A stretch of DNA of 64,000 nt from Macrostomum lignano (GCA_002269645.1 NIVC01001468.1:1-64000); one strand, 5' to 3'; positions 40,701-43,700 are shown, numbered from the stretch's first letter. A program made the numbers and translations. Notes: generated by a model from the sequence alone, not told the origin.

Positions 40701-43700
40701 ACCCGTCTGATCTTTGGTGACCCATTCTGACCTTAGGTGACCCATACTGACCTTAGGTGACCCATTCTGACCTTAGGCGACCCATACTGACTATATTTGA
40801 CCCAACTGATCTTTAGTGACTCCGCCTGACCTTAGGTGACTCCGCCTGACCTTAGGTGACTCCGCCTGACCCTAGGTGACTCCGCCTGACCTTAGGTGAC
40901 TCCGCCTGACCTTAGGTGACTCCGTCTGACCTTAGGTGACTCCGCCTGACCCTAGATGACTCCGCCTGACCTTAGGTGACTCCGCCTGACTTTAGGTGGC
41001 TCCGCCTGACCTTAGGTGACCCATAATGACCTTAGGTGACCCATAATGACCTTAGGTGACCCATAATGACCTTAGGTGACCCATAATGACCTTAGGTGAT
41101 CCATAATGACCTTAGGTGACCCATAATGACCTTAGGTGACCCATAATGACCTTAGGTGACCCCGCCTGATATTAAGTGACCCATACGGACTTTAGATGAC
41201 CTAACTGATCTGTAGTAACCCCGCCTGACCTTAGCTGGTTTATCCTAACCTTAGATAAACACACCTGATCTTTGGTGACCCAAACTGATCCTCGGTGACC
41301 CCGCCCGACCTTAAGTAGCTGGTTAGTCCAGACAAACCTCTGGGGGTCCAATGACTTCCGGGGGACCTTTATTGACCTTCCGTGACCTTGAGGTCTCTAG
41401 CCTAGTTGACCCGGTTCGACCTCCATTGACTACAGCTAAGCTGCCTCCCTCCTGAAAAATTGCGCATTTCAAGTTATTTGGCCCAAACCAAAAAAGTTTC
41501 TCGGGAAGTGCAGAACTACCCCGCAGCTGATTTGCACCCCGATTTTTTGTTTTCCATTTTTCTCCGTAGCCAAAATGATAGCAAATCTCATTTTTATTAA
41601 GCTGTTATTAATTGTAGATCCGCAAAAAATATCAATTTTATTTGTCATCTCCGCTCCCGTGTATGCTCTTAAATTGGTTGTGCAATTTGAATTGGAATGC
41701 GTTCGATTTTCTAGAAACTTGCGGACTAACGTAGCCAGTGAGTTGGTTTGGGCTGCGCCCCCACCCGGCCTTTCTGTTACCATTTCTTTCGTGTAAGCAA
41801 TGGATTATTTTACTGCGTTCGACACCATTGTTATGAAGTAGCGGCAAAATTGCCGAATGGAGCAGCTCGGGCTGCTGTGAGTTCCCCAGCCCGGCTCGAC
41901 CGGCGCCGCGCGCGGGTGCCCCCGCGGCCCGACCCGCGCCAGTCGCCGCGCCGCCTGTAAATTTTTTTTTTCCAATTTTTACAGATTCAGGGCAGATTGC
42001 CCATGAAAATGCCCTCTACGCGGCCGCTGCTCACAGTAAGTTGCTCGCCTATGCCGCGTCTGTGTCACACTCAGCTGCGCCTCTGCTCTCTCTGGTCCAT
42101 GCCTCTCCCGCTTCTTCCCTGCTCTGCTCTGCTCTGCTCTGCTCTGCTCTGCTCTGCTCTGCTCTGCTCTGCTCTGCTCTGCTCTGCTCTGCTCTGCTCT
42201 GCTCTGCTCTGCTCTGCTCTGCTCTGCTCTGCTCTGCTCTGCTCTGCTCTGCTCTGCTCTGCTCTGCTCTGCTCTGCTCTGCTCTGCTCTGCTCTGCTCT
42301 GCTCTGCTCTGCTCTGCTCTGCTCTGCTCTGCTCTGCTCTGCTCTGCTCTGCTCTGCTCTGCTCTGCTCTCTCCTCTCCTCTTCTCTCCTCTCCTGTCCT
42401 CCCGTCTCATCTAGTCTCATCTATTCCATCCTCTCCCCTCTTCTCCTCTTCAGTCATGTTTAGTCTTGAAATTGCACTGGAAACTATGGCTGCCAGAGAC
42501 AGAGAGAGAGTTTATTAATTTTTCCTTCTTCTCTGATATCTTATAAACTCGTCTCTCCCGATGCCGTGTGTGTGTGCGCGCGTTTCTCCGCCAGATTAAT
42601 TACTTTTTTATCTTTGCCAGCTAAGCCTTTTAAAACCAAACCTTTGACTTCCCCTAATATTTCCCATTCCCTATCTGAGAGACGAATTCTAACCCCACTT
42701 CCTATCGTCATATTTGCATGTTTGTCAACTTTTTTACTCGATTTCGCAACGTGTTTTTCTTCCCTGTGCCGTGCCGTGCACACGAAAAGAGAAATTTGTT
42801 TTTAAGATTAGCGAGGCAGTTTGAGGAGGGCTTGGTTTTATTTTAAATCTATAGGCTGTCTTTGAAAGGTTGCCCTATGGAATATTATCCTTGAAAAGTT
42901 ACCCTCTAACCCTCTGGAAAAGGCTATCCTCTGGAATGTTACCCTTTGGAGGAGTTTACCCTCTGAAGAAGGTTACCCTCTTCAAGGTTAACCCCTGGAA
43001 GGTTACCCTCTTCAAGGTTATCCCTGGAAGGTTACCCTCTTCAAGGTTAACCCCTGGAAGGTTACCCTCTTCAAGGTTAACCCCTGGAAGGTTACCCTCT
43101 TCAAGGTTAACCCCTGGAAGGTTACCCTCTTCAAGGTTAACCCCTGGAAGGTTACTCTCTTCAAGGTTAACTCCTGGAAGGTTACCCTCTTCAAGGTTAA
43201 TCCCTGGAAGGTTACCATCTTCAAGGTTAACACCTGGAAGGTTACCCTCTTCAAGGTTAACCCCTGGAAGGTTACTCTCTTCAAGGTTAACCCCTGGAAG
43301 GTTACCCTCTTCAAGGTTAATCCCTGGAAGGTTACCTCCAGAAGATAACCCAGCAGAAGGTGACTCTTTGGAAGGTAATTCTCTAGATGGTTAAAGAAGC
43401 AGAAGGTTACCCTCTGCAAGGTTACCCTCCGCAAAGGTTACCCTCTGGAAGGTTACCCCTCGAAGGTTACCCTCCGGAAGACAACCCAGCAGAAGTTTAC
43501 CTGCAATAATTTTTAGTCTCTGCAACTATACTTGGTAGATTTGCGTCACAAATCAAACTCCTCAAAGTCACAAACTCCTCAAAACCCCCGGAATGCTAGT
43601 GAGCACGGTCGAGTGCAGAAAATGTTACCCCCTTCCCCACATAAATGCGATCAATCCCAATAAGTCAAAGTTATTGCATAATAAAATTTCCTAAATATTT

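Follow-up and report, generated by a model that had tools for sequence, protein, structure and literature searches.

The locus described here raises the question whether a segment of 51 nucleotides (nt), which has the appearance of an exon and lies in a large intron of a receptor gene, is used as one. The segment is at 41985-42035 on the + strand of a 64,000-nt stretch of DNA from the flatworm Macrostomum lignano (GCA_002269645.1, NIVC01001468.1:1-64000), which was analysed at its full length and is called the window hereafter, and the gene is a LAR-type receptor tyrosine phosphatase gene of M. lignano or a very close copy of it. A preliminary description of the window had proposed a 51-nt exon with strong sites and an open frame, and these were found at exactly that place. 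The answer that we favour, tentatively and at somewhat less than an even chance, is that the segment is a low-inclusion, lineage-specific cassette exon and that the repeat beside it is incidental. It would be a splice-competent and frame-preserving cassette in the intron between the second and third fibronectin domains (FN2 and FN3), probably young, confined to its lineage and included in a minority of transcripts. Inclusion would place a linker of 17 residues at the FN2/FN3 hinge and thereby lengthen or loosen the 'beads-on-a-string' ectodomain, and skipping would join FN2 and FN3 by the short linker that is typical of the family. That the segment is really included in RNA, that the including form is the minor one and that the protein is altered in this way are what we infer from the evidence given below.

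The gene was read by joining open stretches of the + strand at GT-AG sites, which gave an uninterrupted protein with a signal peptide, three I-set Ig domains, nine fn3 stretches and a transmembrane helix (Pfam), in keeping with the three Ig domains, eight to nine fibronectin domains and transmembrane segment expected of the family. The hydrophobic transmembrane segment is at the end of the last exon in the window, which stops just past that exon (63876), and the cytoplasmic exons for the phosphatase domains D1 and D2 lie beyond it. The best PDB matches of the spliced protein were PTPRF, PTPRD and PTPRS, and an exhaustive search found a protein near-identical to the exon coding for Ig3 and FN1, namely PAA53983.1 (BOX15_Mlig000129g4) of M. 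lignano, referred to here as P0003. It follows from the near-identity to P0003 and from these PDB matches that the window holds the M. lignano LAR-type gene or a close copy, an Ig/fibronectin receptor, which agrees with the fibronectin domains of the preliminary description. A second protein, UniProt A0A1I8J799 (P0152, 1287 amino acids), is named protein-tyrosine-phosphatase.

Nearly all exons of the gene run from phase 1 to phase 1, as is usual in Ig/fibronectin receptors. The FN2 exon upstream of the segment leaves one codon base, A, at its donor (GCA/gtgagt, a slash marking a splice junction), and the FN3 exon at the other end of the 5.5-kb intron opens with TG, which completes an ATG codon. 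Skipping reads VTLLG-MASQPKGF in frame, and inclusion is also in frame and adds 17 residues. When aligned with PTPRD (4yh7) and PTPRF (6tpw), the 17 residues fall into a gap exactly between FN2 and FN3, the place that had been proposed for them. The segment itself is ATTCAGGGCAGATTGCCCATGAAAATGCCCTCTACGCGGCCGCTGCTCACA and its context is gccgcctgtaaatttttttttttccaatttttacag/ATTCAGGGCAGATTGCCCATGAAAATGCCCTCTACGCGGCCGCTGCTCACA/gtaagttgc, with the acceptor ttttttttttccaatttttacag/A and the donor ACA/gtaagt; the 40 nt 5' of the acceptor are without AG, the nearest preceding one being at 41941-41942. Usable sites and a length and frame that fit both flanks, which is what a cassette exon needs, are thus all present. 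The tandem acceptor of the preliminary description is there as well, the second AG (ending at 41990) lying 6 nt inside the exon and keeping the frame, and a third AG at 41994-41995, which had gone unmentioned, would shift the frame if used. Neither inner AG (41989-41990 and 41994-41995) is used in the gene models P0003 and P0152.

How far such a segment exceeds chance was examined with a splice filter that demands a pyrimidine-rich (at least 75%) CAG or TAG acceptor and a GTRAGT donor. Three of the 11 accepted acceptors and six of the 11 accepted donors of the gene pass it, and the segment passes at both ends. Second-order Markov resamples of the intron, which are not exact shuffles, gave an expectation of 0.03 per intron for a candidate with both sites, a length divisible by three and an open phase. 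In the real introns of the gene, 18 acceptor-donor pairs reach the quality of the filter, and three of these are open and divisible by three (18115-18174, 41570-41737 and the segment), and an open frame of 17 codons would by itself be expected in about 44% of cases ((61/64)^17). The evidence that the candidate exon goes beyond chance is mixed. Codon usage was scored by log-odds, with the accepted exons of the gene and its repeat-masked introns as the two training sets, and that of the segment proved neutral, above that of the two other candidates and below that of all real exons (Table 1); only 14% of stop-free intron windows reach its score, so that it is not intron-like.

The two other candidates are of the same kind. 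The one at 18115-18174 lies in the Ig2 intron, is 60 nt long and open in phase 1, and combines a strong acceptor with a GTAAGT donor; P0152 does not contain it, its codon usage resembles that of introns and it is probably a decoy. The one at 41570-41737 (168 nt, 248 nt 5' of the segment) has strong sites and an open phase 1, is AT-rich and hydrophobic, and is a decoy.

The second copy of the locus bears on both this decoy and the segment. P0003 lies on contig NIVC01002990.1 of the same assembly (L001), which is collinear with the window over 29724-64000, with about 98% identity in unique intron and 98-100% in exons, and which to judge by its sequence is a duplicate or allelic copy of the window locus. 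The segment is identical there (11193-11243), and the segment with both its splice sites is intact in all three copies or haplotypes, that is, in the window, in L001 and in the source of P0152. The donor of 41570-41737 is broken in L001 by a 1-nt insertion, whereas the segment and both its sites are intact in that copy, a difference that carries little weight because the copies diverge so little.

The reasons for preferring a cassette exon can now be put together. It is preferred because the splice signals exceed those of most accepted exons of the gene and are preceded by a 40-nt zone free of AG, because a length divisible by three and an open phase-1 frame go together with exact boundaries in P0152 and a skipped form in P0003, because the insert falls in an inter-domain gap, has a codon score above the decoys and is intact in all copies, and because this family is known for mini-exons in the ectodomain (PMC8711739). 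The boundaries that had been proposed for the exon are those of A0A1I8J799, which contains the 17 residues with exactly the limits 41985-42035.

A considerable number of observations weigh on the other side. In PAA53983.1 FN2 is joined straight to FN3 (39900>45456), reading VTLLGMASQPKGF, and the annotation behind it was made from RNA-seq (SRP082513, SRR2682326; STAR, StringTie, TACO) and mapped de novo transcripts, with alternative coding sequences (CDS) kept (PMC5730564). The product record that was consulted keeps only the longest product per gene, and P0003 is that product, so no longer, insert-bearing product is recorded for its gene. The preliminary description had named as fatal to the exon a finding of 39900>45456 junctions only; this holds for P0003, the only RNA-guided model available, although the transcript assemblers behind P0003 could have lost a minor isoform. 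Inclusion is known from one gene model, P0152, parts of which are demonstrably predicted ab initio. At the end of its FN5 the reading frame is shifted, and the model recovers by way of non-consensus sites and intronic sequence before FN6; its first exon is without the signal peptide encoded at 4597-4744 of the window. The model may have included the segment on the same sequence signals that were seen in the preliminary description, and because P0152 is partly ab initio, inclusion in RNA is putative. In codon usage the segment is under every accepted exon and under 95% of real 16-codon windows, and its third codon positions are 56% G+C compared to 75% in the exons of the gene. The exons of the two copies differ by 0-1.8% (two mismatches in 39702-39900 and three in 45456-45767), so about 0.4 differences would be expected in 51 nt; with a divergence this low the comparison of the copies is uninformative on constraint and the finding of no difference is weightless. 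Finally, alignments of mollusc and vertebrate LAR orthologues leave no room for an insert of about 17 amino acids across the FN2/FN3 boundary.

The N-terminus of P0152 derives from a different open stretch, within the first intron, and is probably a mis-predicted first exon. The annotation to which P0152 belongs is, we believe, that of Wasik et al. 2015, and the M. lignano models of WormBase ParaSite are presumably of the MAKER/SNAP kind. Like the RNA-based model P0003, P0152 leaves out the strongly coding FN4 exon, which hints that transcript hints were used in this region; an assembly indel in the GC-rich FN4 could produce the same. The FN4 exon (47514-47840) is intact, 327 nt long and phase 1 to 1, and has a codon score of +61 bits; its frame is open in the window as well as in L001, the copies differing by a 3-nt indel that keeps the frame. 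Its donor is weak (CAG/gtttgt) and the pyrimidine tract of its acceptor is poor. The exon probably serves as an optional cassette for a whole domain, which calls to mind the skipping of FN4-7 in vertebrate LAR-type receptor phosphatases (LAR-RPTPs).

Table 1. Positions in the window, strands and codon scores of the candidate exon, its signals and neighbours, and the sequences used for comparison
Feature	Position	Strand	Codon score (bit/codon)	Remarks
Candidate cassette exon, 51 nt	41985..42035	+	0.02	Phase 1 to 1; 17 codons; in P0152, absent from P0003; +0.3 bits over 16 codons
3' splice region: T-rich tract tttttttttttccaattttt, acceptor AG at 41983-41984	41943..41984	+		AG-free zone; passes the filter of at least 75% pyrimidine
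5' splice site GTAAGT	42036..42041	+		All six intron positions agree with the consensus
6 nt ATTCAG, lost if the inner AG is used	41985..41990	+		Second AG at 41989-41990; frame kept (RQIAHEN..)
Second half of FN2 exon, upstream flank	39702..39900	+		Open spliced translation; P0003 maps here
FN3 (third fibronectin domain) exon, downstream flank	45456..45767	+		Open spliced translation; P0003 maps here
Perfect (GCTCT)50 microsatellite, 250 nt; (GCUCU)n in the pre-mRNA	42121..42370	.		Starts 85 nt past the donor
Degenerate CT-rich tail, 90% pyrimidine	42371..42449 (end approximate)	.		2 UCUU by motif count
Candidate in the Ig2 intron	18115..18174		-0.52	
Candidate 5' of the segment	41570..41737		-0.70	
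FN4 exon	47514..47840		0.57	Held out from training
Accepted exons of the gene			0.28 to 0.82	

Some other origins of the segment were considered and dropped. No second copy of the exon or its flanks occurs in the window, so the exon is not an exonised copy of a repeat from elsewhere in it. Directly 5' of the T tract of the acceptor is a 98-nt block (41860-41957) of 83% G+C with 18 CpG, which differs at one position from L001 and matches no RNA family; a reading of this block and the T tract as an RNA gene or tRNA-derived SINE was rejected, since no Rfam or tRNA match was found in the intron. The scan of the intron for Rfam families and tRNAs gave nothing relevant, with one sub-threshold miRNA-like match at 43436-43501. 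The exon/exon junction creates an ATG, and an alternative first exon with an internal start was considered by analogy with ptp-3B of C. elegans; it was rejected as unlikely, there being no signal peptide and out-of-frame ATGs within the exon preceding the ATG at the junction.

Further observations concern the copies and relatives of the gene. At 31317 of L001 (window 63215), in the last ectodomain exon, a 1-nt deletion turns CTGCCACGG into CTGCACGG, shifting the frame and giving P0003 its odd C-terminus; the deletion reflects an assembly error or else the decay of a duplicate. Three proteins (P0041, P0090 and P0151) represent a second, older LAR-type paralogue of M. lignano with 57-64% identity over Ig3-FN1; the sequences obtained are N-terminal fragments. 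The signal-peptide exon of the window (4597-4744, ...IDKL, donor C/gtaaga) is homologous to the N-terminus of P0151.

This leaves the question what part the (GCTCT)n tract downstream of the segment plays. The tract is as perfect as had been described, with 50 units beginning 85 nt past the donor where about 80 nt had been given. It is not a special feature of this exon but one of many, since 34% of the window and, in the gene, 41% of the intron positions consist of tandem repeat, so that adjacency of a repeat to an exon carries little information. The spacing of 84 nt is ordinary too, because blocks of repeat 100 bp or longer begin 31-89 nt past the donors of several accepted exons. The length of the tract is polymorphic, 50 perfect units in the window compared to about 27 interrupted units in L001, which shows that the tract is unstable, without a sign of length constraint; this is instability and not tuning, and the suggestion that microsatellite length tunes the exon is left without support. 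Most likely the (GCTCT)50 tract is a bystander among the many unstable tandem repeats of these introns. Two other blocks are larger. The intron that splits FN2 (37907-39683) is almost all a minisatellite of 20-25 nt, about 1.8 kb with about 57 copies of a 25-mer, which reaches within 19 nt of the FN2b acceptor at 39702. In the FN5-FN6 intron, 1.4 kb (52000-53422) is near-pure pyrimidine on the sense strand with runs of up to 442 nt, far bigger than the (GCTCT)50 tract and with no adjoining exon candidate.

The preliminary description had also proposed that PTB-type proteins bind the tract and regulate the exon in neural tissue. The perfect tract contains 50 CUCU and 49 UGCU, with no UCUU and no CUCUCU, and its CUCU tetramers are interrupted by G; the spacer between donor and tract has one UCUU and two CUCUCU, and the 100 nt upstream of the exon have neither motif. 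Regulation by PTB is thus a weak proposal, and neural specificity of the exon found no support. To go by the motifs, if any splicing factor reads the tract, a Muscleblind-type binder of YGCY would fit better than PTB. YGCY within pyrimidines is the motif of MBNL1 (PMC2853123), planarian splicing is under CELF/MBNL antagonism (PMC4978528), and PTBP1/2 are reported to repress nonconserved cryptic exons through CU repeats (PMC5959245). The last of these turns the original idea around, as the repeat could then be the silencer of a cryptic exon.

That the segment is a regulated cassette, its inclusion being set in a length-dependent manner by PTB or a Muscleblind-type protein on (GCUCU)n, or in the mirror image that a repressor recruited by the repeat silences a cryptic exon, is improbable in our estimation. 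The YGCY and CU-repeat precedents just cited, the density of UGCU and CUCU so near the donor and the roughly twofold difference in tract length between the gene copies speak in its favour. The perfect tract, however, is devoid of UCUU and CUCUCU, and repeats that fill 41% of the introns are equally near several accepted exons. A twofold difference in length between near-identical copies argues against rather than for a constraint on length. A UGC between T tract and acceptor is typical of SRRM4-dependent neural microexons, and the candidate acceptor has none. The still more specific idea, that inclusion differs between the recent LAR duplicates because the tract has drifted in length (50 vs about 27 units) and recruits a YGCY-binding factor of the Muscleblind type, or PTB, in a dose-dependent manner, is very improbable.

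The alternative that has to be taken most seriously is that the segment is a pseudo-exon, with look-alike splice sites that are unused or used at noise level, which a gene finder based on a hidden Markov model put into A0A1I8J799; we regard this as a real possibility, though as one that falls short of an even chance. It would explain why the RNA-guided annotation skips the segment, and it agrees with the ab initio behaviour of P0152 elsewhere, with codon usage that is neutral and under that of all real exons, with the presence of two further candidates of the same kind in the introns of the gene, and with the want of an insert at the FN2/FN3 boundary in the orthologues examined. A pseudo-exon, however, would not be expected to have splice signals that beat those of most real exons of the gene or a codon score well over two obvious decoys, and the neighbouring decoy at 41570-41737 has lost its donor in L001 while the segment is intact in all copies. 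The skipping of FN4 by P0152, as in the RNA-based model, is another point against it, as it hints at transcript hints, though an FN4 assembly indel could mimic this. The opposite extreme, a constitutive exon overlooked by the RNA-guided model, is the least probable of all. Strong splice sites and inclusion in P0152 are in its favour, but a 51-nt exon is easy for STAR and StringTie, the transcript-derived CDS joins FN2 and FN3 cleanly and in frame, the orthologues are without an insert at FN2/FN3 and the codon usage is atypical. A cassette exon of low inclusion therefore remains our preferred, if tentative, reading.

What would follow from this depends on which reading holds. In vertebrates, the choice of synaptic partners by LAR-type phosphatases follows a 'code' of tiny optional exons in the ectodomain. 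If the cassette is real, a basal flatworm would have an optional linker at FN2/FN3, a new site, and the habit of ectodomain mini-exons would be shown to arise repeatedly and independently; the case would also be a tractable one, as M. lignano is open to RNA interference and transgenesis. If inclusion were tuned by length, a microsatellite would determine in what ratio the isoforms of a synaptic adhesion receptor are made and would add to the diversity of gene duplicates. A silent decoy would serve as a useful warning, since the segment forms part of a public UniProt sequence. With about 40% of the introns in tandem repeat, a repeat beside an exon says little in any case. Either outcome is of local interest and would not change the field.

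Comparison with known systems places the candidate as follows. Splicing that depends on microsatellite length is known from the CA repeat of eNOS intron 13, which acts with hnRNP L, and from the TG/T tract of CFTR exon 9; the present locus shares with these a polymorphic intronic microsatellite near a splice site and differs in that it shows length polymorphism only (50 vs about 27 units). MBNL binding downstream of an exon generally favours inclusion, and like exons regulated by MBNL the candidate has UGCU motifs, 49 of them at 5-nt spacing 85-335 nt past its donor; unlike them it offers a motif match only, and its long perfect array is more like repeat-expansion RNAs than like regulatory clusters. 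The mini-exons of the muscle-specific domain of NCAM1 sit between its two fibronectin domains and are in this respect similar, being small optional exons that add a hinge or linker peptide at a boundary of two such domains in an Ig/fibronectin adhesion receptor, but they belong to another gene of unrelated sequence, and the NCAM inserts are experimentally established and tissue-specific. With PTB-repressed exons, such as c-src N1 and the cryptic exons with CU repeats that PTBP1/2 are reported to repress (PMC5959245), the candidate has in common that a short exon has a pyrimidine-rich intronic repeat nearby, and it differs from them in that its perfect tract is without the optimal UCUU and CUCUCU and that no repeat lies upstream of it.

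The closest comparison is with the mini-exons of vertebrate LAR-RPTPs, meA in Ig2, meB between Ig2 and Ig3, meC in FN5 and meD near D1, which come from micro-exons of less than 30 nt (PMC8711739). In the window, two introns of about 9 kb lie at the vertebrate meA and meB sites, 15982-24919 in Ig2 (SPNG/DLII) and 25031-34327 between Ig2 and Ig3 (LYVR/VRTISPHF). The candidate differs from meA-meD in its site, FN2/FN3 as against Ig2, Ig2/Ig3, FN5 and the juxtamembrane region, in its size, 51 nt and 17 codons as against micro-exons under 30 nt and peptides of up to 16 amino acids, and in its conservation, as meA-meD are conserved across vertebrates whereas the putative exon is without a counterpart in the orthologues examined; on these three grounds it is outside the canonical set. 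It is like the meA-meD exons of PTPRF, PTPRD and PTPRS in being a short, frame-preserving optional insert in the ectodomain of a member of the same family (PMC8711739), and like meB in particular in that it would insert a flexible linker between two domains (PMC8711739). If real, the candidate exon would therefore be of the same general kind as the known mini-exons of its family, at a new site.

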